Assembly (NCBI GenBank): GCA_977016875.1
Contig: CDRNST010000166.1
Coordinates: 2,046,001-2,110,000, forward strand
Reading direction: 5' to 3'
Length of the DNA stretch: 64,000 bases
Source: Pavona decussata
Lineage: Eukaryota
In this document: positions 9,801 to 43,200 of the stretch, in pieces
How positions within the stretch are numbered: the first letter of the stretch is position 1
Layout of the letters: each line of letters opens with the position of its first letter
Made by a program: the position numbers and the translations under genes
The notes under the pieces: model-generated
The model's input: only the letters and a program-made list of their open reading frames with translations
The model's database searches: none
Told to the model about the DNA's origin: nothing

Positions 9801-12800
9801 GGAAAAACAACAGGAACAGAGATTTCAATCAGAGAGGGATGTACAACTGGCCCGGCATGGTAATGGCGGACAATGAAGCCGGGTACTGGATTATTGTTAT
9901 ATCCAGATCGAACAACATATTAAAACATGTTGCTTTCTGAACGTTTTCTTCACACTCAGACAAACGGAATGAAAAACAACTTAGCCCCTTTTTCAAGTCG
10001 ACTTTTGTGGTTATCACCACTTCGTGGAGGATGTTGTCTTATTTTGCGCGCAATGTATTTTATATTAACATTGAGGTTATTCTTAACGTCGATCACTGCT
10101 GTCTCCCGTGTCCCTAACCTTAATTCTCACTAAAACACACATAATTTTGTCAAACATGAAGTCATATGAAAAAGACAAAAAGGCCTGTTTTATATGAAGT
10201 ACCCAAATTCAGGGTTAGGTGCATTTTTGGACATAAGTGTCTCTCTAAACACGACTTGTTCACTTATCGTGCTACACAAGGCAGAAAAATAACGCTTAAC
10301 CGCATCACTGTATGGCGGACCAAAAATTTTATCCTACATGAGTAGTGAGTTAGTTGTGGACAATTATGGAAAGCAATTGGCTGCAGCCTTGAAGTAAAAC
10401 AGTTTGGGATTATTTGCATTTTTGGTTAATCAGAATTGAGTGCCATTTTCAAGTACATCCCAAAGACGGAAAATTTAGAGATATCCTTACCAAGCACAAT
10501 ACAATCAGCTGTTGCGTTTGTTTTTCCTAAGTAGTTTTGAGCTTCGCAAGTGTATTTGCCAGAATCACCAGCTCCAACTTTGAGGATCACTAGTGACCCA
10601 TCTGCGTCCATCATATAGCTTTCGTTCTTTCCATATTCGATAGCTACACCATCTTTGAACCATCTAAATCTTGGATAGGGTTCTGCCAAAGGTTTGCAAG
10701 GTAACCGTGCCTGGATACCCTTGAATAGGTAGAACGGTCCAAATGACACGAGTTCGAAGGAAGGCTTCGAGGCTGGGAAGAAAAAGACAATTGTCAAAAA
10801 ATTGCTGCCAAAGAGTTACCCTTCTCAGACTCATTACATTAATGCTTCACCAAAAGTGAACAAAGCGCTGTTTGGTTGTACTGAAACAGGAAGCTCTGAT
10901 ATAAAAGGTCCAGGACTAGCTATTCTAACCTGAAGTTATCAATCAACCATCAGAGTGTGAATACCCGTGAAGCAACTGCGTCTTTTCTATGACCATTGTT
11001 TTTTGAGGAATAAATCCTAATCAAGATTTTAAAAACGCAATATTTTATATTGCTCTAGTGATGTTTTGCTACTGCTTAGAAATTTCGAGGCATTTATTTC
11101 ATAGCGGAAGTCAACGTGTAATGACTAAAAGACAAGTCTTTTTTCGTTTCTTTCTACGCGTAGGTATGTTAACAAAGTGAGGGCGCGAAGAGGAACTAGT
11201 TTTAGCGATTGGAACTGTTGTCTTGAGAATAGGGCGGTTTCCAATTCAGTGTCGTAAAACCATAACCAAAGTAATTACTCTGACCAATCGTAACAGATGT
11301 AAACAGCACAATGAACCAATCAGAATTCGAAGCAAATACGCGTTACCGGCGTCAAGCGCGGGAAAGCGCGTGCGGCCAAAAAACGATTGGTTTTGGTTAG
11401 GATTTCCATTGGTTGAGAAAGTGGCGCAGGTTGCTTTTAACCAATCACAGAAAGTAGTAATGTAAAACCAAAACAATCGCGAAGTTACTTTCGACACTCC
11501 ATTGAAAACCGCTCTATGTCGGGACAAAGTATCATTTTTGATAGCAAGCAAGAATTTACCACTACATGTACTTGACTAATCAAACTCCGTATACCCTCAC
11601 GCAAAAAAGTAAATTGTGAAAATTCGATCGTGCTGGTAAATTCCATTTTGAGTAAAAGTGTATAAAAAAAACCTTAATCAGAACAGATTTGCCAATGTTG
11701 TTGGTATTGGTTGGGGTTCATGCGTTCATACATTCCCCAGGTTGTAATTTCCACCACAAGTTAACTGACTTGTAAAAGTGCCTTGAGCACTGACTTACCA
11801 TTAACCTCAATCCTCAACACAGCTTTTTTTCCATCCCCGGCACTGTTGAAGGGGACACACGAATACACACCACTTCCTTGAAGTTGAAGATGGTAAATAC
11901 CACTGGTATTACTACCAAGTAGTTCCTGGTCACGGTAGAATTTGTATCCATCGGCATCTGGATGCGAAAACGTTGTACAATTGAACTTGATGGAGCTGCC
12001 AAATTTAATAGGTTTGGTGATATCTGCGTTGACTGATAGCTTTGTCTTTTCAGGTTTGACTGGAAAATATCAAAGTAAAAAATATATTTAGGGAACTACA
12101 TTACTATTGAGAAAGTGTTTTGTCATTAAGTGGTAACCATATTGAACCTAAATACTGGCGTATAAATAACGTGATCACCACTGTTAAGGTCATCATCATC
12201 ATTATCATCTTCATCATAACAACGTGATACGTGAGATAAGGGGAAAAGAATCAGGACTTACAATGTACATCAAGATAACTGCTAGCATTTGCGGTTCTGT
12301 TTAAGCCATTCTCTGCTGAACACCAGTAATCTCCAGATTGGCTCCTGTGCGCTCGGAAATTTAACGTGTTTCCAGTACCTACAGTCATCCCATCTTTCAT
12401 CCATGATATCTTTGGATTAGGGTTACCAATGGCAGAACAATGAATTGTTGCTACGTTGCCTTCGATAACAGTCTGATAACTGGTCTGTATCGTCACGTCT
12501 GGTGAAACTAAAAAAAGTTACATTTACAATAATTAGTTGCTGGCATGACGAAAATTCGTAGAACGTGAGATTACGACTTAATTCCAACTGAACGACCAAA
12601 ATGTAGGTCCTTAAAACTGAGGGGAGTATATGGCCTCCTTAAATTATCATCTAGCTTTAGTAGAACCCTTTTTTCATTCTCAAATTTTGTTTACTGATGT
12701 CTAGGATAGAAATGGATATTGGGCGAAGGTCTTTCCTTGTCCTCTTAGCTATATAGATAAAATGGTTATTACTTATTGTTCAAATTCTTTCTTTGAAACT

Positions 12801-15800
12801 CGGTTGACTTGATCTCATCCCAGCGTGTCATCTTCACTCCCATGGCAGTGTCCCTTTAACATGACATAACACGATATAGATGGGCGATAAACTCAAGGCT
12901 GTATAAAGGATTAAGAACAACTTGTATCTACCTTGGTGAAGTCAGAAATTGAAGGCTTATTTGTCCTCGCCTTAGCAAAGGAGCAAACAGAAATTAATTT
13001 TAAATGCAGTGTGTCGTCCACAAATTTGTAAGAGTTTGTAGTTTGGTATATCTGCCAACATCATTTTTTGAGGACGACTGTAAAAAGTGCTGATTTTGCG
13101 AGTCTGGACACCTTCAATAATCATGTCTCCGTTTCGAGTGGTACTCTTTGGTCAGTTGGACGACAGCCACCCAAATGCATAGGTCGTCATTACTATCCCC
13201 ATCACCAAAACTACCAACCGAGTCCATGTATTTGACCAGGACTGTGACATGAAAAGGAACAAGACTAAGATCCCGACAAGGACAAAGGCCATTTCCATAA
13301 ACACCAACAGGACTTACGACTATGACTGATTGATCATTATCGCCATGGATATCGTTATTGCCCACATAAATGTCTTTTTCACACCAAAGAAAAGGATTTG
13401 ACACTTACACTGTACATTTAGGTAAGCACTAGCATTGACAGATTCACCCAAGCCATTGTCAGCTGAGCACCAAAATTTTCCAGATTGGTTCCTGTGAGTT
13501 GTGACACGCAGTGTGTCTCCTACACCGACAGTCTTTCCATCTCTGGTCCAAGTGATGCTGGGAATAGGGTTACCAATGGCAGTGCAATGGAATGTGATTT
13601 CATCGCTTTCTCGGACTGTTTTGTCAATCGGAGTAGACGTGAGACTTGCTGGAACTGACAGATTAATAAAAAACAACAACCGCGTTACATTCTGTGTCGC
13701 ACTTTAGCTATAAAGCAGTCTCAGAATTGAGCAGTTCAAGATTAGACTATAACGTGTACCTTTTAGAGTAATTTTTCAATTCCACCCAATAGAGTTTTAT
13801 ATTATGGACTAATTAATATTTTAGATCGTACTTTCGAGGGCATTTCAGTTGTTGGTAGATTTTCGTTGAATAAAAACGTTTTAGTGGTATTATATAAACT
13901 GCAAGAATCTTTTTCCTTTTCTTGACAAGCAAAAGGTTATGCACGATGTTGTGGGGACGAAATGAAGAGCATAGTGCCTTTAAATAAGGTAAACAGGCCA
14001 CTACGAGCTTAAGTAGGCCACTATGGCGGAGCTTAACCCGTTTGTATAGCGTGGAGGAGTATTGCTCCATCCCCCTGGGTGGCTAGTCCATCGCAGGGTT
14101 ACCCCTAGCATTATGTCGCCAGTACCCATTTACACACCTGGGTGAAGAGACGCTCTAATCACCACACCACTGTGTCTCCCTTTATGAAAATAGTCATTAA
14201 ATGTTTGATAGTGACCTTAGAATCACAATTTATTCCAACCACTGATCTAAAAGGATACTTGTGCGAGATTTATACTCGGGAAAAGTTGAATTTATATTAC
14301 CTGTTTGATGACTGAATTTAAATGTTATCATTTCAACCTTTACCCACTGATCACAATCTCATACAACAGGATAAAGACCAGCTTTTCAGATTGAATCTCT
14401 GACATAAATCAGCACACATTTCTCTTACTTCAAGTAAACAACGCCTTAGTACTTACATCTTACGTCAAGGAAGGCGCTAGAGTTGATGAATTTTTGAATA
14501 CCATTCTCGGCAGAACACCAATATTGGCCCGACCGACTTCTTGATGCTTCAAAGCTCAGCGTATTTCCAGTACCTAGTGTCTTTCCATCTTTAGACCAAG
14601 TTATGTTAGGAGTTGGGTTTCCAATGGCAACGCAATGAAACGTTGCCATGGTACCCTCCATGACAGTCTGGTTTGATGGTCTTTTAGTCCAACTTGGTGA
14701 GTCTACAAATTGGAACACAAATAACTTATTTGAATCAAATAAAATTGTTTAGTCGAGCAGTTCGATTCTTATCATTAATTTTGTTATGGCGGCAAATCAT
14801 CTGTATTTCTGTTTGCTATTATGTTACTCATTTACCGCAGCCCTTCTTTTTCATGCAGCATTCACTAATTCTCTGTATGGAAGCCTTAATGTACAACTGC
14901 AGAGTTCCCCAAGCCTTTGTCTTGGTTGTCCTAACGATTTCTTCAAGAAAGTAACGGAATGCAGAGAGCACCCACTAATAACCTACCCTCTGCGGTCTTC
15001 AGATTGAAAGTCCTATGGATGGGCTTTTTACTATGATGCTAGCACATTAAGATTTTTGATTACGGTTATGTAAAGCCCGAGAAACGTAACTAAAGTAATC
15101 GGTACTTATTTTTACACTTTATAGGTAAACAGTTGTTTAATACTTACATTTCACTTCAAGATGAGCACTAACGTTGATAGACAAGCCCACGCCATTCTCC
15201 ACCGAACACCAGTATTTTCCAGAATCATTCTGGACTGCTTTAAAGATCAGAGTTTCTTCTGAGCCCACAGTTTCCCCATCTTTAATCCACTTAATCCTAG
15301 GCACAGGGTTACCACTTGCAGTGCAATTGAATACAGCATCCGAGAATTCATTGACTGTTTGATCCGCTGGCTTAGTTATTAAATGTGGTGGAACTATAAC
15401 AGGAAATTGTAGTCAATCAATTATAGTTGTAACGGCCTATTTAATTACATAGGTATGTGCGGCCTCAAGCGGTCCGATTCTCTTTGGTCAGAAATAGGTT
15501 ATATTACAAAAGTATAAGGGGTTGTTAAGTCTTCTGAAATATGGTATCTAAAGTAACACATTTTGTTGGAAATAAGGCTAACGTTTCCCCACTTGAGCTA
15601 CACAAGCCCTTCCAATAAAATTTGCGGGGTTCCCTATATCGCCTTGTACGGTTGCCAACATGTAGTCACTATTGTAGCTTGCTCGGTAGTTTAAGTCTCT
15701 AATCGGAAAAACAGATTTTTATGCAATGGTTAATACATACACTGAACATCAAGATTGGCACTAGCATTGACAGTTGAATCCAGGCCATTCTCAGCTGAAC

Positions 15801-16185
15801 ACCAGTATTTTCCAGAGTAACTCCTTTTGGCCTCCAAGTTAAGTGTTTCTCCTGTGCCCACAGTCTTTCCATCCTTAATCCATGTTATATTTGGAGCAGG
15901 GTTTCCTGTAGCAAAACAATGAAATGTTGCCATTGTACCCTCTGTGAGCGTCTGATCAGCTGGTGTCGTCACTAAACTTGGGCCAACTAACAAGAAAAAC
16001 AAAAATCAGTTACTTAAGAAAGTAGATGTCCATCCAAACAGGGCCCAATAAACAGTAAGAACGCGACGACATGGCCACCTTATTTGTGTACCGTAAACTA
16101 AAGGTTTGTCAGCTTTCTTTATGGTAGTACGCCAGCATGTCTGCCACGCTACTGCCATTGGAACCTGTAGGAACTTACTTACATT

Positions 16186-16232
<47 letters not shown>

Positions 16233-19200
16233 CATCATCATCAATCCTTAGCACTCCCCGGAGAGCATAGGGCGTCCACCACTGCACGCCACCTTGCACG
16301 ATTCCTTGCTGTCAAATCCGCGATATATATTTGATCATATGTAACGTCGGTTTTCTGCTTAACAACATCATTGGAGGCAAGGCTAGTAAAAGAGTTACAC
16401 TTAAATTTTTTTAACTTACACTGAACATCAAGGGAAACACTTGTAATATTTGCATCGATTTCATTTTCCGCGAAACACCAGTATTTTCCAGAATCGTTTC
16501 GCTTGGCTTCCAATCTCAGGATTTCCTCTGTACCTACAGTCTCTCCATCTTTAATCCACGTTATGTTAGGTGTTGGGCTGCCTTTAGCGCTACAGTGGAA
16601 CGTGATTTGTTCACCTTCTCTGACTTTTTGATCAGTTGGTGTTCTTGAAAAACTGGGTGGAACTGCAAAAAAAAGGTAAATATTCAGTTACGTTTACTTA
16701 CTTTTTCAGAAGGAAATGACGTACTAAGGCATAATACCCTAACATTTGTTAGAGAACGTGATCACACAACAGATAAGTAAAGTTGGCACATGCATGGTAA
16801 CGTTCCTTAAGTTTGCAGAAATGATTAACATATCAAACTGTTCACGAGAATTGGAATTCTTCTTACAGCTGACATATGAATGTCAAATATACCTCGCTTA
16901 GTTTCAAGAAATCAAATCCAGCACACGTCTACTCTTCCAGCAGTTTGAGTCAAATTGGCTCGCATGCGTATACTGAAGACAATATGCACTCTTAGGATAT
17001 ACATTCCATGGTATACCGCTTTTTAAAAACACCGCATAACTAGCTATAACTAACCGCTAGTAAATATCTTACGGTTTTGCACTTACACTGCACATCGAGG
17101 ACGGCGCTAGCATTGCCAGCTGGTTGTAAACCATTGTCCGCTGAACACCAGTATTTTCCAGAATGATTCCTGAATGCTTGGAAGCTCAGTTCCTCTCCTT
17201 CCGCCACAGGCATGCCATCTTTACTCCATGTTATGTTTGGAGCTGGGTTGCCGATGACAGAACAGCGGAATGTTGCTATCGCGCCCTCAATAACTGTTTG
17301 TTGTGTTGGATGTATTGTCGAACTTGGCGGAACTGCAGCAAAAATCATAAAAGCAATTAAGAGAATTGAAAATCTTTTTACAATATCCATGATCGTATTT
17401 CAAGACAGATGGCTAACGTTTTTAAAAGTAGCCCTCGCAAATTGTTTGGCAAATATCATTGATAGCAATGTTTAGTTTTGTGGATCCTTACTTCCCGATA
17501 ATTTAAGTCAAATTGTTAGATAAGTATACGGTACGAAATCCATGATGATATCTTCAAATGCCCTGTGCAATTCTCCTCAAATGTATGACATCTTTTTACA
17601 ATATCCATGATCCTATTTCCAGACAGATAGCTAACATTTTTTGAAAGTAGCCCTTGCAAGTTGTTAGGCAAATATCACTGATAGCAAAGTTCAGTTCTGT
17701 GAATCCATACTTCTCGATAATTTAAGTCGAACTGTTAGATAAGTATACGGCACGAAATCCATGATGATATGTTCAAATGCCCTTTACAATTCTCCTCAAA
17801 TGTATGATGAAGTGTCAACATACAAAGGAGCCTATACCAACCCCCTTTTGGTCAATTACTGATTTCACCCCACCCTCCCGACCGGAAAAAAATATTAAAA
17901 TAAAGAAGAAGTTGCGACCAAGTCCACCAATCGTTTAAGCCACGGTGCTCTTTTAGGCGATCATTCAAATGATTAAAAATACAAAACTACTGCAACAGCG
18001 TCAAACTTGGCAGCTGCTTTTGTCTCGATTAGAAAGATGTTTGAGAAATTCAGGTATCGAAATCTTGCATTGCTTTGGGGAATGATGGTAATCCTAATCC
18101 TGTACCTATCTGTACTGTTGTTCACCTGATCACAGTTTAGATGCAAGAATATTAAAACTTACACTGCACATCAAGTTGGATACTAGCGTTGATATTCACA
18201 CCCAGTCCATTCCCTGCAGAACACCAATATTTTCCAGAATCATTTCTGTACGCCGTTAACCTGAATGTGTCCCCTGTGGCTATGGTTTTTCCTTGTCTGT
18301 ACCACGTTATCGTCGGAGTTGGGTTACCAGTGGCATCGCAATGGAATATGGTATCATCACCTTCTTTGACTGTTTGATCAACTGAAGTTGATGTAAAACT
18401 TGGTGGAACTGTCAAGCAAACAAACAAAAAAAAAATAGTTTTGGTCGTAGTTTATCAGGACCAACAATTTTAACTACGTCAGAGCCACGAAAGATTTAGA
18501 TAAGGAAGACCCAAGGAAGTTGCAATTTTTTCCTATTGTTTTCGCATTGGACTGATAGGCCAGGGATGTAATAGTTTTGTATTATTATAGGCGAAGCGTT
18601 AAAAACGTTTAATGCCTAAGTCACGTTGTCTGAGCACGCACACCGGATTAATCCTAAATAGGGATTTTAAATTTGGAATTCTCGTGACCAACAGCAGCAG
18701 CAACACAATATGAACGAAATGCCCAAATTAGCTTTAATAGGCTTATAGTAGACCAGTCACCCTATTGTCATTGAACCAATAAGGAGTCTACACTTCAGTA
18801 AGCGCCCCCCTTTACAGAGGACGTTTTACTGAAGATCAATGGAAAATTAAGGAAGGTATTGTGCAAACAACCCGGTGCAAAACTTAGATAATTAACATGA
18901 AGACTGCATATACCCTGCCGGATAATAGTTAGAGAATACCCATTGTGACCACAATGATTAGAAAAACCCGTAGACAAACTGTTTAACTCTTAATTATCTT
19001 AGCAGAAAACGAAATAATTTTAATTGGAAAACAACATAATTAGGCCGCATCAGAAAATTTCTCCCTTCTTTTGTCACGGCCCGTGGCATCGTTGCCTATC
19101 AGTGCATCGTTGCCTACCTGTCTTCGAAAACAAATTGTTACGTAAGCAAATATACACTCACATTGGACATTTAGATAAGCAATTGCTTTTACAGTTGCGT

Positions 19201-22200
19201 TAAAGCCATTATCAGCTAGACACCAATATCTTCCAGAGTCGTTCCTTTTCGTGACAAAGGAAAGTGTGTCTTCTTCACCCACAGTCTTTCCATCCTTTAT
19301 CCATCTGATCTTTGGAGTTGGGTTTCCAGTCGCATTACAATGAAATGTTGCCATGGCACCCTCGATCACGGTCTGGTTAGTAGGCTGCATGTCCAAACTT
19401 GCTGAATCTACAACAGTTAAAGAGTAGAATTACACATTATGGTTGGGATATGCATGTGGCTCTCCTTAGCAATATCTCTAAGACATAATGGGAGTCTTAC
19501 ATTTTTTACAAAAATTGAAAACGATTTTCTTTTAACTTTTGCTTGAATGTTTTATTTCAATGCGAGTTTTACGTGCCCTTCGACAACAAAATCCAGGATG
19601 GTAGATTACTACAGGCCAGCTTTGTAGAGCTGTACACGATGATATCATTCTAACTCACATCACATTTTATGGACACGTATCCAGTGTAAGGCATAATAGT
19701 TAATACTGAAAAGTCAATGGGGATAGCTTTCACTGTACAAAAGTTGTCGAACTTACATTGAACATCAAAGGAAACGCTAGTGTTGACAGTTTTGCCTATT
19801 CCATTATCCGCTGAACACCAGTATACTCCAGAGTGATCTTTCCTAGCTTCAAAGCTCAGTTTTTCTCCTGTAGCCACAGTATTGCCATCATTAGTCCAGG
19901 TTATGTTTGGCACAGGGTTACCAGTGGCATTACAGGTAAACGTAACCTGATCCATCTCAGTCACAGTCTGATCGAAAGGTGTGATAGTAAAACTTGGTGG
20001 AACTAGAAATTAAAATGTGAAAAGAAAGTTGGAAATCAGTTCGTTACGGGTGGCATGGCCAACGGTTGTCAATGTAACTTGTAACATGACTAATTGATTA
20101 AAAATCAATCAAAAGAGACTTGGATAACTCATGCATATTAATGCAGCGAGAAACTGTTTATGTTATAACACTGACAATACTGTTCAAGGGTAATGCAAAG
20201 AATAGTCGGCGAGTTGAGCCAACTTCGACAATTTTTTTTTTTTTCGCCGAATTTTCACAGAGGTGGGAAATGTATTGCAACAGTACGTTGCTCTCTCCCT
20301 TTTATGGGGACACAAACGTTAGTCTCATGATCACTCTGTACCAACAAGGGAAAACCTCCAACCACACATGACCGTCATCCGTAAAGTAACCATTGCCAAA
20401 TTAAAACAAGGTTGTCGTTCGTACTCAGTCATTCTCATGAGCCAAATTTACAATTAGCATGGCTTCGAAACCTCAGAGTTACTCTATTCCCGTCATAATC
20501 CATTTCCATTTCCCGAGCAAGCAGATGGGCTACAAAAACTTCACGTTTCGTAATGATTTCAATATGTGTTTACCCTTGTGGATAGAGACAAATCGATAAG
20601 AACATTGAAGAACTTCACCCTTTTGACAAGAAAAAGGATCAAACTGTACTCTTTACTTCATGTCAACGTAGCTGAGACCATAGTATTTGTGCATGGACAT
20701 ACATAAGCGAGTACTTTCCCATTCAGCGTCATACTTACACTGGACATCGAGGTAAGCACTAACGTTGGCCGTACCAATGAGACCATTATCTGCGATGCAC
20801 CAGTATTCTCCAGACCGATTCCTGACTGCGTCAAACGTTAATGTTTCTCCTTCAGCCACAACTGTGTTATCTTTGATCCATTTTATTTCTGGTTCAGGGT
20901 TACCAGACGCAGTGCAGTGAAAAGTTACTTTGCTGCCTTCAGTGATGGTCTGTTTACTTGGCGTTTCAGTCAGAGTTGGAGTAACTACATGAAATAAGAT
21001 ATAATAGTACATAAATGGAATGTCGTACAACGAGAAGAAGGTGTTACTGATACTCTCAAGACTACGTGGTTCGTCTCTATTTTCTGTAACATAAAGCAAC
21101 TTATCCCACTGCTTCATCATCTTGATCGAATGCTAGTCTGCGGCAATTTGTTCAGGTAATTTTCCGTACATTCGTTCCATGGTATCTATGAATGTACTTA
21201 AATTATTTGGAGATCAACAATACGGAGTAACCTTTGTTGTCCCACGAAATAACACAAGGTGATGACCAGCTTGAAGTCGTATTTCTTACGATCTTCCAAA
21301 GCCTGATAAAATGTCGACACTCTTGCAACTATATCACTGCGGTTCCTCTCATGTAAAGTTTCCGTTCAATCTTAAATGTTCATGAAATAAAAGAAATTTT
21401 CAATGTACTTACACTGCACATCAAGGAAAGCACTTGCACTGATAGCCAATCCCACTCCATTCTCAGCTGAACACCAGTATTCTCCAGATTGATTCCTATG
21501 TGTTTCAAAGTTCAGTGTGTCTCCAGTACCCACAGTCTTGCCATCTTTAGTCCAAGTTATATTTGGCTCAGGGTTACCAGCAGCAGTGCAGGTAAATGTA
21601 GTTTGCTCCTTCTCAGTCACGGTTTGATTTGAAGGTGTGCTGGTGAAGCTTGGTGGAACTAAAATGATAACATTAAATCACAATAAGAAATAATTGAATG
21701 CACGCAGATCGCGTGGGATATAAATTGTGCTCTGCTTTGAGCACTTGATAGCTCAGCTATCCAGTGCTTAAAGCAGAGCACTATAAAGTAGTTATAGCCA
21801 AGTACCAAGCCGCTAGAAAGTGCGCTATTGTTTTACTGATGAGGCCTAAGAAAGAGGAAACAACTGTCCATGGCTACCACTAACTGCGTGATTTGGCTGT
21901 GTGTATCCTTAAGGTGCTGGCCAACCGCAGAGCTATGCATTGTGACCTTTGCAGGCCTTGCGGATTAAATGGTCTTTTTTGTTTTTAAACTTACACAGTA
22001 CATTGCCAAAGTTCATTGGAGGATGTCTCTCTTATTCCATTTAGGAATCGTGCTCTTGTATCGGTCGTTTAATAATTCGAAGAATTTTTGACGAGACACG
22101 AAAGAAAACCGTGGCCGATGTTCAAACCCATACACGGTCGTCATACACGTCCTTCGGTAAACCTTGTCATGGAATGCTCAAGACAGCATAGACAATTGGC

Positions 22201-31200: not shown

Positions 31201-34200
31201 ACACAAGTATTCTCCAGATTTATTCCTATGTGTTTCGAGGCTCAGTGTGTCTCCAGAACCCACATTCTTCCCGTCTTTAATCCAAGTAATATTTGGCGCA
31301 GGGTTACCAGTAGCGGTGCAGGTAAAAGTGGTTTGCTCCTTTTCAATCAGGGTCTGATTTGAAGGTGTGCTGGTGAAACCTGGTGGGACTACAAGGTTAA
31401 AATAAAATGATAGTAACTCTGAACTCGTGGTATACACATTTCATACTATAGGGCTGTGCTTTATGCACTGCAGAAGATATGCTGTGGTTTACACTGCACA
31501 GCGAGTGCTAGCTTTACTAGGTAGGATTTCTAGCATTAGCAGCTGGTTGTAAACCATTGCAGCAATACTTTTGAGAACAATTGATGTATGTTTGAAAGCT
31601 CAGTTTCTTTCCTTTTTCACATTATAGCAATAATAGTGTTGCTTGAGCGCATTTTCTTTCTAAATATTCGAATGCGCTTGTATGATTAAAAGTAAACTTA
31701 ACAAACAGTATCCACAGCAAGCGACCATTACTAGAAATCTATACATTAAACTAAATTATTCATTCTTCACGGATCTTAAGTATTTCCACTGGGTAACTGT
31801 CACTAACATCAGATAATTTAAATCCTCCACTCCCGTCAACAGCGATTGAACCAATGACTTTCGTCTATATTCCACTGCAACTATCTAGAAATACAAATAA
31901 ATACACCTGTAAATATCTACTCACATTTTACATTGAGATAAGCAATGGCTTTGACGGTTGCATTAAAGCCATTATCAGCTAAACACCAATATCTTCCAGA
32001 GTCGTTCCTTTTTGTGACAATGGAAAGTGTGTCTTTTTCACCCACAGTCTTTCCATCCTTTACCCATCTGATCTTTGGAGTTGGGTTACCGGTAGCATTG
32101 CAGTGAAATATTGCCATGGCACCCTCTATGACAGTCTGGTTAGTGGGCTGCATGTCCAAACTTGCCGAGTCTACAACAGTTAAAGATGACGGTCAAAAAA
32201 TTGCGGTTAGAATATACACGTGGAAAAGAACGACTAATATTATCATTCCAACCCATCGACTCCCTTTAGAGACGTTTATTCAGTATTTCCGTCATACACA
32301 TCACGCCAATCATATGTTTGTTACTTGCTTTAAATTTTTACTTTTTTTGTTTGACACATCGGTTCAATGCCTTGTGTAGCTTTGCCTCGAAAGCAAAATC
32401 CAGGAAAGTGGATTTCAGCAAGCAGCCCTTTTACAGCTGTGAGTAACAATGTCATTCCACCTCACATCACATTTGTATGTACGCCTATTCAGTGTTTAAA
32501 ACTTTATGGTTTCAACGTTCCTTTAGACAGTCAACGGTGACAGCTGTCAACGTGCAGAGGCTTACAAACTTACACTGAACATCAAGGAAAACGCGGGTGT
32601 TGATACTCTTGTCTATTCCATTTTCTGCTGAACACCAGTATACTCCGGAGTTATTTTTCCTAGCTTCAAAGCTCAGTGTTTCTCCTATACCCACAGTCTT
32701 GCCATCTTTACTCCAGGTTATGTTTGGAACGGGGTTACCAGTGGCAGTGCAATTGAACGTAATTTGATCCTTCTCAGTCACGGTAAGATCGGAAGGTGTG
32801 ATAGTAAAACTTGGTGGAACTAGAAATTATAATATGAAAAGAAGTTAGAAATGAGTACGGAGTGAATGAAATGGCCCTTTGTTGATGCATATAACGTCTG
32901 CGGTAACTGATTCCTCAGATATCGGCAATCCACGAGACTTGGATAACTCATGTCAGAACTAAGCGAAAAGATCTTCAGAATTAGCATTACTCAGAGTTAA
33001 AGGAATTTAGCCCATTCTTTTCATAATTGGTTGGCTGCTTTTTTTTTTCCGATGCTGTGAAATAACTAAAAAAATGTCAATTTTCTGAAATATTTCAGTA
33101 CTTTATTTACCTTTCTAGGGACGTCAACAACTCTTCATCATGTTCACAACCAAAACAAATGAAACTGTATTCTTTATTTCATATCAAACGGATTAAAAAC
33201 AATAACATTTGAGCTTGCACATACAGAGGCACATCCCCCCCCCCTCCCCCCGAGCTTCTCCATATCTTGTAACACAACCTTAACGTCCTACTTACACTGG
33301 ACATCAAGGTACGTGCTAGCGTTGGCCGTGTCATTGAGACCATTATCTGCGATGCACCAGTATTCTCCAGATCGATTCCTGAGTGCGTCAAACGTTAATG
33401 TTTCTCCTCCACCCACAACTATGTCATCTTTGATCCATTTTATTTCTGGTATAGGGTTACCAGACGCAGTGCAGTGAAATGTAACACTGATGCCTTCAGT
33501 GATGGTCTGTTTATTTGACGTTTCAGTCAGAGTTGGGGCAACTGCAGAATAATAAGATTGAAAAGTACAGCAATGACATCGTAGAAGGAGGAAAGGGCCG
33601 AGACCTGCAGTGCAAAGCACCACTTATATTCTGAAGGTTAGGTGGTTCATCCCTACTTTCTGTAACATAGCGGGAATAAGACCATTGCCTTTTCACTCTG
33701 ATCCCAGATGCAAGTCCATCACTAGGTTCTTATTATTTTGTACGGAGGATTATTTGAAATAATCTTCCGTACATTAGTTTCATGGTACCTATGAATGCAC
33801 TTCTGTCCTCAATTGTTCAGAGATCAACAACATGGAGCAGCTTTTCTTGACCCAATAAATAAAACAGTGCGATGACCAGAGTGGAACCAAATTTTTTACG
33901 ACCTACCCAAGCCTAATTAAACGACAGACACCCTCTCATCACAACAGCACTGCGTATGCTCGCATGCAAACTTTCCATTGTATCGTAACTATATATAAAG
34001 TAAAAGAGAGTTTACACGGCACTTACGTATACACTGCACATCTAGGTAAGCACTTGCGTTGATAGCCAATCCCACTCCATTCTCAGCTGAACACCAGTAT
34101 TCTCCAGATTGATTCTTGCGTGTTTCGAGAGTCAGTGTGTCTCCTGTACCCACAGTCTTCCCGTCTTTAATCCAGGTAATATTTGGCGCAGGGTTACCAG

Positions 34201-37200
34201 CAGCGTTGCAGGTAAATGTAGTTTTCTCCTTCTCTGTCACGGTCTGATTTGAAGGTGTGTTGGTAAAACTTGGTGGAACTAAAAAGATAAGATGACAGTG
34301 ACAAAAATTAATGGCGTCCTAAATTCGTGTGATATACATTTTATTCTATACAGCTAAGGTCTAAGCGATTCATAGCTAGCTTTAGCTAAGTTTGAAACCA
34401 ATAAAAGGAATATGCTACGGTTTGCACTGAATATCGAGAGCTAATATTGGCAAGTGATTGTTATCTTAATCGCCTGAGAAGACAACTAAATAATTTAATT
34501 AAAAAACAAGATTATTTGGCCGCTTGATCAGAGATTCTGCTTCCCTGTGACACAGCGTTTGAGAAAGGTGCTTATGAGTTAGTATTCAACGGTGATTGAA
34601 CCAATAAGATTTAAGTATGTTCCACTGCACCTATCTAGGAATGCAAATAATTACAGGCGTAAATATATACTCACATTTTACATTCAGGTAAGCAATTGCT
34701 TTGACAGTTGCGTTAAAGCCATTATCAGCTAAACACCAATATCTTCCAGAGTCGTTCTTTTTTGTGACAAAGGAAAGTGCGTCTTCTTCACCCACAGTCT
34801 TTCCATCCTTTATCCATCTGATCTTTGGTGTTGGGTTACCGGTGGCATTGCAGTGAAATGTTGCCATGGCACCCTCTATGACAGTCTGGTTAGTGGGGTA
34901 CATATCCAAACTGGCTGAATCTGCAACAATTAAAAATTAGAATTAGAAATTTCAGTTGGATAAAGCGCGTGGGAAAGAACTACTTACATGACTCCCACTC
35001 TTCGACTCTCTTTAGGGAGATTTATTCAGTATATCCCTGAGACATATGTTTTGCCAATGATATATTTTTTATATATATTAAGAGCGTTTCTAAATTTGTA
35101 CTGTTTTTTTTTTTATTTGTTTTAGTTTTTACGTTTCGGTTCAATGCCTTTTGTACGTTTGCTTCGAGAACCAAATTCCAGGATACTGGATTTCTGCAGG
35201 TGGGCTTTGCTCAGCTGTACATAAGATAACGATTTTAATCTACCCCTAATCACATTTCTCTGGGTACCTATCCACTGTTTACGGCTTTATAGTTTCAAGG
35301 AATCCTTAGTCAGCATACAGCAGCGGCGACAGCTGTCAATGTGCAAAGGCTTACAAACTTACGCTGAACATCTAGGGAAACGCTAGTGTTGATACTTTTG
35401 TCTATTCCATTATCCGCTGAACACCAGTATACTCCAGAGCGATTTCTTCTAGCTTCAAAGCTTAGTGTTTCTTCTCTACCCACAGTCTTGCCATCTTTAA
35501 TCCAGGTTATGTTTGGCGCAGGGTTACCAGTGGCAGTGCAAGTCAACGTAATTTGATCCTTCTCTGGGACAGTCTGATCGGAAGGTGTGATAGTAACAGT
35601 TGGCGGAACTAGGAATGAAAATATGAAACAAAAGTAAGACATTAGTGCACAGTGGACTAAATGCCCCTCCGTTGGCGAACATAACATCTACAATTACTAA
35701 GTCATCGAAAGCAATCAATGCAATTTGGATAACTCATATTGGCGCTAAAAGAAACTTTCGTTTCCAGACTTTCAATCATATATGACCGACAGCTATAAAG
35801 CGGCCATTGTCGATTGTTGTTCGTTGTCCACTATTCTTCAGAATTAGGATGACTTCGAGATATAAGATTGAACACAATTTAGCTGTGTCTTCATTGTTTG
35901 CGCTTTTTCTTTTCACGAGCCAGCGGAATGAATAAAAAAACTTCCACTAGGCATTCACTCTTCTCTGATCAAATTAAAGCGAGAAAACCATTGAAGAACG
36001 CTTCGTCCTTTCCAGAACAACAAAATCAGACTGTACTCTTTATTTTATATCAAACTGAATGAAACTGATAATGTTAGGCCGGTACGTACACAAGTGAGTA
36101 TCTCCCATCCCTTGTGTCTATGTCTTGGAACAAAACCTACAGCGTCATACTTACAGTGGACATCAAGGTAGGCGCTTGCGTTGGCCGTGTCATTGAGACC
36201 ATTATCTGCCATGCACCAGTATTCTCCAGATCGATTCCTGAGAGCGTCAAACGTTAGTGTTTCTCCTTCACCCACAACTACTTCATCTTTGGTCCATTTT
36301 ATTTGTGGTACAGGGTTACCAGACGCAGTGCAAAGAAATCTCACCTTGCTGCCTTCAGTGATGGTCTGTTTACGTGGTGTTTCAGTCAGAGTTGGAGCAA
36401 CTACAGGATATAAGGTATAACAGTACATCAAGATCATATCGGGCAAGGAGGAAAACGCCGAGATCTGCAGTGCAAAGTGTCACTGATATTCTCAAGACTG
36501 CGTGGTTCAGCTTTATTTTGTAACATAAAGGGACTAAGACTATTATGTTTTGACCCCGAACGGGATGTTAGTCCATCGCAAGGTGCTCAGCTTTTTGATA
36601 ATCTAATTTTCAGAACATTATTTGCACAATCTATAATATGGAATAAGGTTTGTTGCTGGACAAGAAATAGCACAACGTAGTAAAGAGCTTAACTGAAACA
36701 CCTTCTGTGTGTCCTTCGAAGGCACGATAAAAAGTCGCATGCCATCATCACAAAATAAATGCGTTGATTCGTGAGGGAGCTTTTGGTGACATCAAAAATG
36801 ATCATGAAGTAAAAACGAATAACTTTTCACTGTACTTACACTGCACATCAAGGTAAGCACTTGCACTGATAGCCAATCCCACTCCATTTTCAGCTGAACA
36901 CAGGTATTCTCCAGATTGATTCCTATGTGATTCGAGGCACAGTTTGTCCCCAGAAGCCACAGGAATCCCATCTTTAGTCCAGGTTATGTTTGGCGCAGGG
37001 TTACCAGCAGCGGCGCAGGTAAATGTGGTTAGCTCCTTCTCAGTCACGGTTTGATTTAAAGGTGTCCTAGTAAAACTTGGTGGGACTAAAATGATAACAA
37101 AAGATCACACTAAGACGTTTGCGGGTTAAATACCCCTCTGTTTTTAAAAGCATTTCCTCAGAAACTTAACTTATAACACGTTACTCAGTGTAGCGATGTC

Positions 37201-40200
37201 AAATGATAATAGTGTGAAAATAAAAATCGATTAATACCAGCCAATGGACTGTTAATTGATAGTAACAACGAAAATTCCATTTACAAAATCATTTGCATGG
37301 TGTCGTTGCTATCGATTGTCTCGAAGCTTATACGTGGGCGTATTTTATGGTTAATGGAAAAACTTTTCTGTTGGCACTCGTAGCTTTTTTGTGTCACTAT
37401 TAGCTCCGAAATTCAATCATCTTCAAGGAGAGACTCGTGGATAGCGCCTCTCCTGCTCGATTTTGGTAAGCCTTTCCGAGAAAGTCGAAAACCTACTATC
37501 TTGAAAATATAGCATGGATGAAAACTAAACCGATTTCCATCTTTTTTCGGCCAAACTAGGAAAATTCTGCGGTGTAGTTTTTAGGCACACGTAGCCTATA
37601 CCCATCATTTAAAGCTTACATAAAGCAGTGTTGTCTCCTTATTCCTATCCCGGACTGGGGAGACGAAGAAAAATATCAGCACCTTTATCGTTTTTGAGAG
37701 GACAGTTGAACTTGTGTCACGAAGGTTAGAAAATTTCACATCCCCCTTCCTTCTTTTTCCCTCCCCCTTTTTTTTTTTCGTCATCATCATCGTTTATTTG
37801 CCTTAGTAAAAGAAGAAAACATTTAAATTACAAGTTAAGGTAATAGCGAGAAGACCTCATGAAACCACCAGGCTTATAAGAGAGGACACCTCGGCTGTCA
37901 TTAATAAATATAAAATATGGTTCTGCGTAAGTGTGGCTTGGTCAATTCATGATTTCACAAATAAAAACTCCAACATTTTCTCCTTAAGGGTGAGAAAAAC
38001 TAGATGAATAAGTAATGTATATTGGGGTAGAGTTCCAGATTTTGGGACCTTGGTAAAGGATTGTAAATTGCTACAGATTTGTGCGACAAGAATGCGATCG
38101 ATAGCGGTTGGCTATTCTGTTACCATAATTATGCACTTGGCTACTTGTTAAAACAAATTCAGAATTTTTAGATCTACTTTTTTAACATAAGGTGGATATT
38201 CCGCCAATAAGACTTATAAAACACTAAAGCTACTAGGATGATACGATGGCGTTAATGGCAAACGTTCAAATGCTGTTAATTGCTAACTCCCTTAAGCACC
38301 TTTGACTGTAGTAGATTTATCACAAATTGAAATAACAATCCGAGCTTCAAGCTACGTTTATGCATGGTATAGTTGATAGATTTAAGGCCACTGCTTGGTA
38401 ATCTTCGAAAAATTACATTTGTTTAAGCCCTCATCTTTTTCTACATGTGCTGAATGGGTAATCGAGGGAAAGATGTCCGATCAAAACAGTTATTTGAAGT
38501 CAAATTACGGTTAGTGGACAACCTTACGAAAGCCTTTTTAAGTGATCGGTGGCTTTCGATCTGTTTTTTATAGCCATATGTCCGTAGGTGTACTGTTTGT
38601 CGAATCAGTTGGTTTGTCTTTCGTTTTGAAGTCGTTTGTCAGATGTAGGTAGTTGCATCCCTTCAGTGGTGTTTCTTCTTAGTAAGTAAAGCCGATTTCT
38701 GGAGTTAATAGTAGTCAAAAAAGACATCCCTTCACACTTACACTGTACATCAAGGTATGAACCAGCCTTTATTGATTTGCCCAATCCATTGTCTGCCCAA
38801 CACCAATATTCACCAGTTTCATTTCTGGATGCCTTTAATCTCAGAGTGATTTCGGTGCCAACAGTTTTTCCATCTTTTACCCATTTTATCTCTGGCATAG
38901 GATTTCCAGTGGCGGTGCAATGTAATGTGGTTTCTTCAAACTCGATCAAAGTCTGGTTGGCTGGTTCCTTTGTAAAACTTGGTGGATCTGAAATTTAGAG
39001 GAACGGTTATTGAGGTGGAGCATCTGGTTAAAAGACATTCGTTACGAAAACGAAGTGGTGTATTCTTTTGCACAATGTGGATAAACAGTTATCCCAAAGA
39101 TGTTTCCTTTGGCGTCCGCAACGAAAAGTGTTGACGTCATATTACGTGGTAATTACGTCACGATTGCCAGGAAAGCGCTAATTGAGCTTGAAAGATAAAA
39201 GTTATTACGAGAAAAGTAATTTTTGTTCATTTAAAAAAAGGGATTTTCCATTTTCTGGAAAATCGCCAATGAAAAATTTCTTACCTTGTTAAGCCAATAG
39301 ACACTAACTGACCACATCAAATTGTTCACAGGAAAAATTCTAAAAACCTGGTAAAATTTCATGGTGTTTGCTCCAGTATTAAAAAAGTTATTCACGTTCA
39401 AAGTCCCTGAGGGCAGAACCACCCCCCCCCCCCCCTTTACCCTGGTCTAGATAGGGCTAATATTCAACTGAAGATGTATAGATCAAGCTGTTTTTGTAAA
39501 ACTTAGTTTTTAAGATGCCTTCAAATGCCGTATTAAACGTTAATAAGTTAGTCTCAGTTGGCATACGCAACTGCTGGAAAAATGCTTTGGAGTCATTCAA
39601 AGAACCACGCGTCTTTTACTTACACTGTACATTGAGGTACGCAATCGAGTTGACGGTGGCGTTCAATCCATTACTTGCTAAGCACCAGTACTTTCCAGAA
39701 TGATTCCTCAAAGCAGTAAAGCTCAGTTCGCTTCCTGTCTGCAAAGTCGTCCCATCCTTGAACCACATTATCTGTGGCACAGGATTGCCAGTGGCAGAAC
39801 AATGGAAGGTTACGTGATCGGTTTCGTTGACGGTCTGGTTTACTGCTTTTGAGACGAGACTTGGCAAATCTAGAGGAAAAATTCACATGATTAGTTTTAA
39901 GACCCTCGCTTTGACAAGAAAACATTGAGAAAAATTTGTCATAAATGGCGCCTGTTTTACAATTCTTCTCATGTGTTAACCTTGCAAAAAGTGGACTTGT
40001 ATTCATTGACACTGAGACAAGGTTACCACACTTACAGAGCACATTGAGGTAAGCGCTCGCATTGACTGTTGAATCGATCCCATTCTCCGCTGAGCACCAG
40101 TACCTTCCCGACTGATTCCTAAATGCTGCAAAGTTCAGTGTCTCTCCAGTTCCCACCATCCGCCCATCTTTAGTCCATGTTATCTCTGGGGTTGGGTTTC

Positions 40201-43200
40201 CAGTGGCAGTGCATTGGAATGTTGTGTTATCACCTTCAATAACCGTTTGGTTGGTTGGCCATATGAGTAAACTTGGAGCATCTGTAGGAGGAAAGAATTG
40301 TTCTTAGGTTCCACGATTTTTCCACCAGTTCTCAGCTTAACTTGATTTGTCATTTAACCACCAAGACATAAACAAAAGACAAACGGCACACATTGTTTGA
40401 TGAAAATTTCGCAATTTGAAACCTGTCTAGTGTAATTGATTGCATTTGAAATTAGGCTGACTTTTACATTGGTGCCTTGGTAGCTGATAGGTTGAATAGA
40501 AGCGGATCACAAACTTTCTGCCAGATTGAATATGGGTATTGGAAGAGAGAAACAAACTGTACTGTACTGTATGGTATTCTGTATTGCATCCCTTTTTGAT
40601 GATCCTGACGAATAACACGACGTTCTTACTTACACAGGATGTTAAGCGTAGCACTGGCATTGACAGTTACGTTAAGGCCATTTTCAGCTAAACACCAGTA
40701 TTTTCCTGTATGATTCCTCAGCGTCTCAAGACGCAGTTTCTCTCCATCACCCAATACCTCCCCATCTTTGCTCCAGGTTATCTTAGCAGTTGGGTTGCCT
40801 TTGGCAATGCAGTGCAGTGTTACAATCTCTCCTTCAATGGCTTCCCGATCCTCTGGAATCGTTGTCAATTGTGGTGGAACTGCGAAAGACACGAGCTTTT
40901 TACTTTTTTATTTAAACAAATATTTATAGATGTCCAATTCAGCAGGACTGGGGCTAGATTCACGCAGCCCTCAATTAAGATGTATCCTTAACGCTGTTTT
41001 TTTTTTTTTTTTTTTTTTAACAAAAGACTATTATTATAGTGACATGGGGCTATTTTCAAGTACAATACTAACTAAAGGATATTTAGAAAAAAAAATTAGC
41101 TTTAAGGATCCAAAAAATAAATTTTAGCGTGCAAGCTTTCGACTCCTTCACGAAATCGTATCCTTAGTATTTTTTATCATTATATAAACACCAGTGAAAT
41201 ACCACGAAAACATATCTTTACACGTGAAAATAACATGTTATCTTCACACGTGAAAAGATCACCGCTGCTATGGTTACATAATAAATCGTGCCTTTTGCAA
41301 TGATTTGGTATTTCATTGGTGTTTATATAATAGACAGAACATTACATGGCCGCTTGGAGATACGAAATTTTTCTTCGAGTGTTAAAAAATATTTCACGAG
41401 TGAGCGCAGCCTAATTTTCATCCTAGTACTATACACTAAGAATTGTGGCCTAATTTTCATCCTAGTAGTATACATACTGAATTTGTCCTAATTTTCATCT
41501 TAATACTATACACTATGAATTTTGGCCTAATTTTCATCCTAGTAGTATACACTATAAATTTGGCCTAATTTTCATCTTAATACTATGCACTATGAATTTT
41601 GGCCTAATTTTCATCCTTGTAGTATACACTATGAATTTGGCCTAATTTTCATCTTAATACTATGCACTATGAATTTTGGCCTAATTTTCATCCTTGTAGT
41701 ATACACTATGAATTTTGGCCTAATTTTTATCCTAGTAGTATACACTGTGTAATTTGCATAGTGTATATTCTATACACTATGCTTTTTGGACTTATTTTCA
41801 TCCCTTAACAAATAAAGAAGCCTCGACTGTGCTCTGTTCTGTTGTAAAGCACGCAGGAAGCGGCGAGAGCACGAAAGAAGTGTAGGGGGAAACACGAGAC
41901 GTAGTCGAGTGTTTCTCCCTACTTGTTGAGTGCTCTAGCCGCTTCCTAAGTGCTTTACAACAGAACAGAGCACAGCCGAGGCTTCTTTATTTGTTTTATG
42001 ATAAAGAATTCTTTTATTTCCCCTAGCATTCACCCTCATTTTCAAAACCAACTTCATTTTCCGAACGAACAGATCTGGCGTCAGCGTGCATCTGTACTCT
42101 GATAAAGCACGCTAAAATAAGCCAATCACAATCCTTGTTAGAATGTTTCAAATGATTTGATTGGATGAACAACACGACAGCCGTCAGACATGTCAAAACA
42201 AGGCATCAAAGTTTACAAACTTTGCTCAGATCGCTCAGTTCGAATGTAACGCCAGTAGCGTTAGCGCTTCTTCAGTTTTCCCTTTCAAAAATCAGGATGG
42301 AAAAGTAAAATGTTCATTGAAATCAGGTGGATTTGTGGCGCGTGAAAATCTGGACGTCATCAACATGGCAATTCAAAAACAAACTGCTTTAAAGCTTGCG
42401 GCCGGTAATAAATCAACTGCTGCGCTGTGTTTTGTGAATGAACAACAGTCGAATTCACGGGAGCAAGAGGAGTGTTCGAACTGTTGACACCGTTAGGAAA
42501 TGGCTGCTGTGACTGCTGTGGCTTCCCACTCAATGCTCCAGAGAGGATATCTGAACAAGCTGTAAGTTGTTCACTCGAAGGGCGAGCGTTGTAATTTCTG
42601 AGGCTTGCTTCATTGCGGTGAGCGGAGGTGGCCATGATGCGGCGTGATAGCACTTGCACCAAAAATGTAAGGATCTTGTAAGCTTATATACTTGTGTATT
42701 CCTTAGCTAATTAAATTTTGAGTTCTCTCAATTTTTTGTTTGATCTTTTTGTACGAGAATATAGCTAACGAGCGTTTAGGGACCTTTTAACACTTGCTTA
42801 AGCTTGTGACATTTTTACACCTTTCGTTCTAAAACTTGAGCTGTCCATTTTATGCTATCTTTGGTGTTTATCGTCTCTGCCTTCGATGTAATTTCGACCA
42901 TTTCGTCGGTTGACATGACTGTTTGCAAATCTCTGTTTGTTTATATTTCTACTTGGCTCTGTGTTTTAGTCGCTAACTTCTTCGGAAACCTCACTTTCAA
43001 TCACCGTGTTATTTGTACTGTTTTTTTTTTTTTTTTTACCTTATATGCGCACAGGATGGTCTATGGCCAGCTCGTTTACGTTTTCTAGGTTATNNNNNNN
43101 NNNNNNNNNNNNNNNNNNNNNNNNNNNNNNNNNNNNNNNNNNNNNNNNNNNNNNNNNNNNNNNNNNNNNNNNNNNNNNNNNNNNNNNNNNNNNNNNNNNN

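Follow-up and report, generated by a model that had tools for sequence, protein, structure and literature searches.

An L1-Family Gene of Pavona decussata with an Array of 37 One-Domain Immunoglobulin Exons, Probably Spliced in Series

Introduction

How does a gene make use of 37 consecutive exons, each of which encodes a single immunoglobulin (Ig) domain: one at a time, in varying subsets, or all in series? This question is raised by a stretch of 64,000 nucleotides of Pavona decussata DNA (assembly GCA_977016875.1, contig CDRNST010000166.1, positions 2,046,001 to 2,110,000 of the forward strand), referred to below as the window, the minus strand of which carries such an array within a gene that we assign to the L1 family of adhesion receptors. 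The L1 family is among the most conserved animal receptors built of Ig and fibronectin type III (FN3) domains, and its members have six Ig domains from placozoans to humans. L1 proteins have been recorded in Cnidaria and Placozoa and connected with septate junctions (PMC10084454). The skeletal organic matrix of Acropora contains a neuroglian-like protein (PMC3748352), and matches to this matrix protein were found in the transcriptomes of corallimorpharians (PMC5604590). An L1-family gene with an expanded array of Ig exons did not turn up in our literature searches, in agreement with a prediction made from the letters of the window (hereafter, the original prediction), which regarded such a gene as undescribed and proposed a Dscam-like or titin-like diversification of its products.

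Here, we describe the locus and weigh the ways in which the array could be used. On balance, we think it likely that the window carries a single large minus-strand gene for a type I membrane adhesion protein of the anthozoan L1/neuroglian family, and that this protein is a giant, the exons of the array being spliced in series to give an Ig stalk that evolves in length. One lineage would then have turned an L1 gene into a predicted 44- to 62-Ig receptor, with units gained and lost between sister species and every exon intact. Such a locus would provide a natural system in which to follow the construction of giant extracellular proteins by tandem exon duplication and unequal crossing-over, and it bears on whether exon arrays of this kind serve isoform diversity outside Bilateria.

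Organization of the Exon Array

Both strands of the window were scanned for segments enclosed by AG and GT and open in a phase 1-1 frame, and overlapping alternatives were then removed. The raw scan gave 44 minus-strand candidates of 246 nucleotides (nt), against 3 from the plus strand, and the final set comprised 37 non-overlapping minus-strand exons between positions 11799 and 40879: 35 of 246 nt, 1 of 243 nt, and 1 of 261 nt. The original prediction of 36 paralogous exons and one of 261 nt, all in phase 1-1 and open, with AG/GT sites, was thus reproduced exactly in its counts. Its claim that each exon is one Ig domain was borne out in all ten exons scanned with Pfam, each of which gave a single complete domain above threshold (Ig_3, I-set or Ig_2).

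The splice sites of the array were uniformly of consensus strength. The donors were GTAAGT in 29 exons, GTGAGT in 6, and GTATAC and GTATGT in 1 each, the acceptors were preceded by pyrimidine tracts (mean 73% pyrimidine), and the introns, 166-1656 nt in length, were all GT-AG. All 36 paralogous exons and the last exon, A37, were symmetric (phase 1-1), and every domain border that could be placed in the gene was in phase 1; one-domain exons of phase 1-1 are the rule for Ig and FN3 genes. In total, the array encodes 3,038 amino acids (aa) with 116 N-glycosylation sequons (here and below, protein lengths quoted for this gene are sums of exon lengths). No further exon copies were detected in the window by tblastn of all exon translations, except for one relic of 28-31 aa on the minus strand in the intron between A12 and A13 (31532-31615), which was 58% identical to A30 over 31 aa and had stops on both sides.

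Comparison of exon identity divided the array into 12 old divergent exons, six copies of a four-exon unit, and A37. The old exons, A01-A04 (38742-40879, 246 nt each) and A29-A36 (12262-18408, including the 243-nt exon A31 at 16420-16662), were 53-72% identical at the nt level to every other exon of the window, with values of 53-70% for A01-A04. The exons A05-A28 (19162-37085) formed six tandem copies of a unit composed of types a, b, c, and d, with nt identities of 82-94% among exons of the same type and of about 57-80% among exons of different types. The 261-nt exon A37 (11799-12059) encodes an Ig domain of a distinct type (Pfam Ig_2, 31.9 bits). Taken together, these comparisons indicate that the array grew in two layers, an old divergent exon set and a four-exon unit multiplied by unequal crossing-over.

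The introns between the young copies were about 65-70% identical where they could be aligned well, and less so after type-d exons, as compared with 85-94% for the exons. The introns were therefore diverged, as originally predicted; the accompanying claim that transposable elements had invaded them found no support, since the long introns had no second copy anywhere within the window. Among the young paralogues A05-A28, dN/dS was 0.13-0.38 at a dS of about 0.27. The type-d exons (19162-19407, 22427-22672, 25671-25916, 28260-28505, 31925-32170 and 34675-34920) showed a dN/dS of 0.13 among the unit copies, as opposed to 0.30-0.38 for the other three types, and were also the most conserved between P. 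decussata and the sister species described below.

The L1-Family Gene Around the Array

Along the minus strand, Ig1-4 and Ig5a precede the array, and Ig5b and Ig6 follow it, succeeded by five FN3 domains, a transmembrane (TM) segment, and a tail of the Bravo_FIGEY type. From Ig1 to the stop codon, the gene covers no less than 51 kb. Ig1 (51624-51935, phase 1-1, Pfam Ig_3/I-set) is the first recognisable exon; the signal-peptide exon upstream of it was not located. Ig2 (~49512-49823), Ig3 (two exons, ~49055-49162 and 48285-48521, with a Pfam match on Ig3b), and Ig4 (two exons, ~46955-47059 and 45816-45923, with a Pfam match on Ig4a) were placed by tblastn of coral L1-like proteins. The Ig5a exon (44653-44937, 285 nt, phase 1-1, I-set 50.8 bits) is of the kind found in a short coral paralogue, which is described below. 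The intron between it and the array (40880-44652) holds a 39-bp satellite detected with Tandem Repeats Finder, copies of which lie at 41409-41755 and 43346-43592, as well as a run of N at 43094-43236; another run of N (1009-1149) lies in the intron between the TM and tail exons, and no exon seems to be affected by either of them.

On the other side of the array, the Ig5b exon (10491-10772, 282 nt, phase 1-1, I-set 51.6 bits) encodes a second Ig5, 44% identical to Ig5a, and is followed by the Ig6 exon (9497-9793, Ig_3/I-set). The FN3 domains were located by tblastn of the canonical coral L1 proteins P0183 and P0184, which cover all five of them except for the first piece of domain 2 (FN2a), read from open frames: domain 1 at 8663-8959, domain 2 at ~7573-7650 and in part of 6618-6965, domain 3 in the remainder of 6618-6965 and at 6036-6254, domain 4 at ~4762-5049, and domain 5 at ~3616-3741 and 3023-3169. 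Four pieces of this region (3023-8959) were matched by Pfam fn3. The TM exon (1420-1545), an open frame encoding a hydrophobic stretch and then basic residues, is 48% identical to the TM region of P0183. The open frame that holds the cytoplasmic tail exon (632-901) contains the L1-type motif DGSFIGDL, followed by a stop codon, and matched PF13882 Bravo_FIGEY with an E value of 1.3e-8 (36.4 bits, cut-off 23.8), with FIGDL in place of the L1-type FIGQY, so that the tyrosine is missing.

The order of Ig domains, FN3 domains, and a single TM segment is collinear with that of P0183 and P0184, and the match of the tail corresponds to the cytoplasmic Bravo/FIGQY-type region of L1 proteins. This domain order, together with the phase-1 borders and the Bravo_FIGEY tail, indicates that the locus is an L1-family gene, and the original prediction of an L1-family receptor was sound in this respect. 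Instead of exactly six Ig domains, the protein would have 44 if all exons were used, 38 of them extra and located between Ig4 and Ig5b, and for this reason we file the gene as a divergent L1 variant and not as a typical member of the family.

Conservation and Turnover of the Array in a Sister Species

A search with the Ig5a exon retrieved two long-read contigs from ENA. One of them (L004) was 100% identical to the window, and the other came from a relative at about 81-90% nt identity, referred to here as the sister species, whose locus was rebuilt from overlapping pieces of one contig and its alternative haplotig. The architecture was the same, including the order A37, Ig5b, Ig6, and FN3, and the region Ig2-Ig4 (45816-49823 of the window) was 91-100% identical at the aa level. 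The array of the sister species consisted of 54 exons of 246 nt and an A37-type exon, and AG/GT sites and open frames were present in 55/55. The exons A01-A04 had 1:1 orthologues there (89-96% nt identity), as did A32-A36 (92-97%), and the counterpart of A31 was probably the exon R49 (84% protein identity). No orthologue was found in the sister species for A29 and A30, and eight old exons located between its A01 and A02 were absent from the window. The four-exon unit occurred in nine copies, some of which were 97-100% alike; the six units here and nine there indicate that the multiplication of the unit is still ongoing.

The pooled omega between the two species was 0.27 for the array exons, as compared with 0.30 for the core L1 exons, and purifying selection acts on every array exon. 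Because of this constraint and of the layout in the sister species, the array can be regarded as a real and conserved part of this gene, which the substitution pattern indicates to be translated and which turns over by the gain and loss of units.

The same comparison bears on whether the array could be an artefact of assembly, in which repeats were mis-expanded or mis-joined. Tandem repeats are prone to such errors, and L004, the sole contig that matched at 100%, is the same sequence as the window and not independent of it. However, the units differ by 6-18% and are easily resolved by long reads, and in the independent assembly of the sister species the architecture recurred on both haplotigs, with coverages of about 74x and 80x according to the contig names. 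Thus, we regard an artefact as extremely unlikely.

The two haplotigs were 99.5% identical over 8 kb of the array, up to an insertion with an integrase open reading frame (ORF) in one of them, which points to ordinary heterozygosity and not to the hyper-polymorphism of recognition loci. The insertion is of the retroelement type and several kb long, lies in an array intron (L007:13300-20522, contig ctg61222), and contains an rve integrase ORF; since it is absent from the other haplotig, L008, a mobile element segregates inside the gene of the sister species. In addition, the intron between Ig5a and the array is about 14 kb long in this species, much of it made up of tandem repeats of the 39-bp type (L003:10953-20252, L005), and the first array exon is pushed far downstream. 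Many single-exon ORFs of the array type were also present on other large ENA contigs, which suggests that such arrays occur in further related genomes.

Splicing of the Array

Homologous exons of corals are used in series. Full-length RNA contigs and RefSeq models of the short coral gene join Ig1-5 to two or three array-type Ig domains in series, followed by FN3, TM, and tail. In a Pocillopora-type cluster, all 15 listed members were 1000-1020 aa long, with 13 of them being RNA-assembly contigs of exactly 1000 aa, and the RefSeq isoforms of coral homologues differed from each other by 3-50 aa, never by one 82-aa domain. The conservation of intron flanks was not elevated at the array exons (0.83/0.77, as compared with 0.76/0.83 at the core exons). 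Moreover, no terminal or first exon was found between the array and its neighbours, and the FN3, TM, and tail sequences of the short type matched nothing else in the window. We favour serial inclusion because the splice sites are strong, the constraint on the exons is like that on the core, the intron flanks are ordinary, and corals use such exons serially; we favour a single gene because the junction order A37-Ig5b-Ig6-FN3 is kept in an independent long-read assembly.

A contig of 998 nt from another data set (L013, Logan SRR23372227) contained two array-type Ig domains contiguous without an intron, with intron-like sequence on both sides. Either another species has lost the intron or the contig derives from a pre-mRNA that was only partly spliced, and in both cases the two domains are used serially there.

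The original prediction had considered a hypervariable system like that of arthropod Dscam1. In such a system, one or a few of the 36 paralogous exons would be included per transcript, and the many resulting receptor isoforms would serve self/non-self or neuronal recognition. The locus indeed has tandem paralogous Ig exons of equal length and phase (35 of 246 nt and 1 of 243 nt, phase 1-1), their frames are maintained at 57-94% nt identity between exons, and their copy number turns over fast between species. However, no docking site or other exclusivity device was detected by an exact k-mer scan: none of the 10-mers or 12-mers taken from the two flanking introns had reverse-complement matches in more than 2 array introns out of 36, a figure equal to that of the same-sense control, and since the scan was limited to exact k-mers, degenerate pairings could be missed. 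The lengths of the introns (166-1656 nt) rule out steric exclusion, and all of them are GT-AG. As multiple inclusion keeps the frame and no exclusivity device was found, nothing that we found would enforce the choice of one exon. In addition, the homologous exons are serial in corals, the haplotigs of the sister species show no hyper-polymorphism, and the protein is of the L1 type and not of the Dscam type. This part of the original prediction was not supported, and we consider such a system very unlikely.

Doubtful, to a lesser degree, is a titin-like tuning of length, by which blocks of the array would be skipped depending on the tissue, stage or individual, yielding stalks of graded length and, at the extreme, perhaps a canonical six-Ig L1 with Ig4 joined to Ig5b. 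All exons of the array and of the flanking domains are symmetric, so that any skip would be in frame. As in titin, there is one Ig domain per symmetric exon in a higher-order repeat, here a four-exon super-repeat present in six copies in the window and in nine in the sister species, and the locus contains every part of the short and the canonical coral genes, which are separate in stony corals. On the other hand, the splice sites are uniformly strong, constraint on the array exons equals that on the core exons, the intron flanks are no better conserved at the former than at the latter, coral homologues show no isoform steps of 82 aa, and our searches with the Ig5a exon and a 36-exon profile found no transcript showing skipping. 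We find it rather improbable that the use of the array is combinatorial, with cells, stages or colonies including different subsets of the 36 exons, down to a six-Ig L1, to produce a large repertoire of L1-type receptors varying in both length and sequence, which stony corals would have split into the short and canonical genes; if it were so, the array would be a non-bilaterian counterpart of Dscam or titin diversification. What stood of the canonical, giant, and intermediate isoforms of the original prediction is that all of them would be in frame.

Several points weigh against serial use in a single gene for a giant stalked protein. No spliced transcript or protein of this species was found in the searches with the Ig5a exon and the 36-exon profile, in which a filter of 0.55-1.75x query length could hide longer ones; all that these searches returned were genomic ORFs of single exons that read through into introns, belonging to this and to related genomes. 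Every border is in phase 1, and the skipping of any subset of exons would therefore leave the frame intact. To our knowledge, no L1 protein described so far combines two Ig5 domains with a total of 44 Ig domains. Since the tail has FIGDL, with no tyrosine, ankyrin binding is not assured. Finally, the grounds on which the Ig run may be assigned a stalk function are its composition and the analogy with sialoadhesin- and hemicentin-like proteins.

Two Coral Genes Correspond to the Two Halves of the Locus

A search of the whole library with one array exon gave hemicentin-, CD22-, and sialoadhesin-like proteins as top matches, with identities of about 35-41%, and no gene model of this locus. A small fragment from Orbicella was conspicuous in this search and led to full-length RNA contigs in its cluster. 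The proteins P0163 and P0166 (1006 aa) and the contig L002 (SRR28002515) consist of a signal peptide, Ig1-5, three array-type Ig domains in series, one FN3 domain, TM, and an L1-like tail. A search with P0163 revealed two paralogues in stony corals, a short one of about 1000 aa and the canonical L1 of 1235-1276 aa. The short gene was seen in Oculina, Pocillopora, Porites, Acropora, and Stylophora (as 'Neuroglian'), and its products from Porites lutea (XP_073228960.1), Acropora muricata (XP_067024144.1), Oculina patagonica (XP_078342486.1), and Pocillopora verrucosa (XP_066030478.1) are annotated as 'fibronectin type III domain-containing protein-like'. The canonical coral L1 with a Bravo_FIGEY tail was seen in Orbicella and Montipora, and it is represented by P0183 with its cluster mate from Orbicella faveolata (XP_020621868.1) and by P0184 and the Montipora protein XP_068714968.1. 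Outside cnidarians, the best matches of these coral relatives were vertebrate NrCAM and L1. The nearest proteins to the locus thus came from stony corals, which agrees with the probable cnidarian source named in the original prediction; the identity per exon to every sampled stony coral was only about 40-63%.

The Ig1 domain of the window was 54-63% identical to the short type, as compared with 43-49% to the canonical coral L1, and for Ig5a the corresponding values were 52-63% and 40-45%. The final Ig domain of P0176 and of the short-type proteins from Porites and Acropora was homologous to A37, which was 41% identical to P0177:695-790. In contrast, Ig6 matched the canonical coral L1 only (45% identity to P0183 and 43% to P0184), and the counterparts of Ig6, FN3 domains 2-5, and the tail were found in the canonical coral L1 alone. 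The locus therefore combines the head and array of the short gene with the body of the canonical gene, which are separate genes in stony corals. This correspondence between two separate genes and the two halves of one locus is relevant to the way in which gene duplicates and alternative architectures give rise to each other.

The nearness of the head to the short type, the exclusive match of Ig6, FN3 domains 2-5, and the Bravo_FIGEY tail to the canonical L1, and the separate, unlinked position of the two genes in stony corals would all fit a chimaera or a locus of two products, with Ig1-5a and the array forming a short-type head and Ig5b to the tail being a remnant of the canonical L1, the two being separately transcribed or terminated, or one of them decaying. 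However, the two halves show equally strong purifying selection between the species, the junction order is conserved, and both junction borders are in phase 1. Moreover, the window has neither FN3, TM, and tail exons that could serve the head nor Ig1-4 or a signal exon that could serve the tail. Trees of Ig1, Ig5, and FN1, with approximately unbiased (AU) tests on Ig1, Ig2, and FN1, rejected no tested constrained clade (p 0.13-0.36), and thus did not reject a single ancestral long gene. Two products from this locus, or a chimaera that does not act as one gene, are quite unlikely. A tandem fusion of the short and canonical genes found no synteny support in the Porites and Orbicella loci: the short gene of Porites lies between a DUF885 gene and a collagen/Ig gene, and in Orbicella the short and canonical paralogues lie on different scaffolds.

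The Predicted Protein and Its Comparison with Known Systems

According to the reading that we favour, that of serial use in a single gene, tandem exon duplication would have built 36 I-set Ig exons and one distinct Ig exon between two Ig5-like domains. The exons would normally be spliced in series, and the main product would comprise about 4,400 aa and 44 Ig domains. Within it, the tightly abutting and heavily glycosylated Ig domains of the array (3,038 aa) may act as an elongated stalk or tether, keeping the L1-type head, Ig1-4, at a great distance from Ig5b, Ig6, and the FN3 domains next to the membrane. If each Ig domain spans about 4 nm, such a stalk would measure roughly 150 nm, which raises the question of its role in a cnidarian epithelium. 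The evolving trait would then be the length of the stalk, changing fast, and not the choice among exons. The predicted protein may have a homophilic or ankyrin-linked role in adhesion.

With L1CAM, neurofascin, NrCAM, CHL1, and Drosophila neuroglian, as well as with the canonical coral L1, the predicted protein shares Ig1-6, five FN3 domains, a single TM segment, and the Bravo_FIGEY tail. It differs from them by the 38 extra Ig domains (Ig5a, the 36 of the array, and A37) between Ig4 and Ig5, by FIGDL instead of FIGQY, and by a head closer to the short-type paralogue of corals. With the short gene it shares Ig1-5 followed by array-type I-set Ig domains with one exon each, an L1-like tail, and, in the case of Porites, Acropora, and P0176, the A37-type last Ig; unlike it, the short gene has only two or three array-type Ig domains and one FN3 domain, lacks Ig5b, Ig6, and FN3 domains 2-5, and gives transcripts of fixed length.

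The arrays of the titin I-band and of hemicentins resemble the one described here in having one Ig domain per symmetric exon, a super-repeat duplicated in blocks, and a giant product, which in our case is predicted, and hemicentins were the top library matches of a single array exon, at about 35% identity. However, the protein of the window would be extracellular, anchored in the membrane, and of the L1 type, and neither a titin kinase nor hemicentin end domains were seen in it. Arthropod Dscam1 likewise has tandem paralogous Ig exons of equal length in a gene for an Ig-FN3 adhesion receptor; here, in contrast, no docking or selector elements were found, the exons are whole extra domains in frame and not alternatives for one position, and relatives use them serially. 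The stalks of sialoadhesin (Siglec-1) and CD22 provide an analogy, since in both cases many similar glycosylated Ig domains follow one another and could keep a binding head away from the membrane, and fish CD22/sialoadhesin-like proteins were among the closest single-domain matches of an array exon (41%). The family is nevertheless unrelated, and the protein predicted here has no V-set head that would bind sialic acid.

Additional Observations in Coral Relatives

The Montipora 'hemicentin-1-like' protein P0004, considered as a possible relative of this locus, proved to be unrelated. The short gene of Orbicella faveolata (L001:4565-18114, MZGG01001010.1) showed an apparent tandem repeat of 6.8 kb that extends from Ig3 through three array exons; this locus holds 4,377 N, and the repeat is possibly an artefact of haplotype duplication in the assembly. 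In the protein P0187 (Montipora foliosa isoform X4, 1380 aa), an ectodomain of the canonical L1 type and a TM segment were joined to a protein kinase domain (PF07714/PF00069), so that it is either a real receptor kinase with an L1 ectodomain or a read-through model. Finally, short translated similarities on the opposite strand were found between the window (4541-4746 and 41829-41935, both intronic) and the Porites lutea locus (L012:23984-24196 and 34314-34457), and they probably reflect a repeat family shared among hexacorals.

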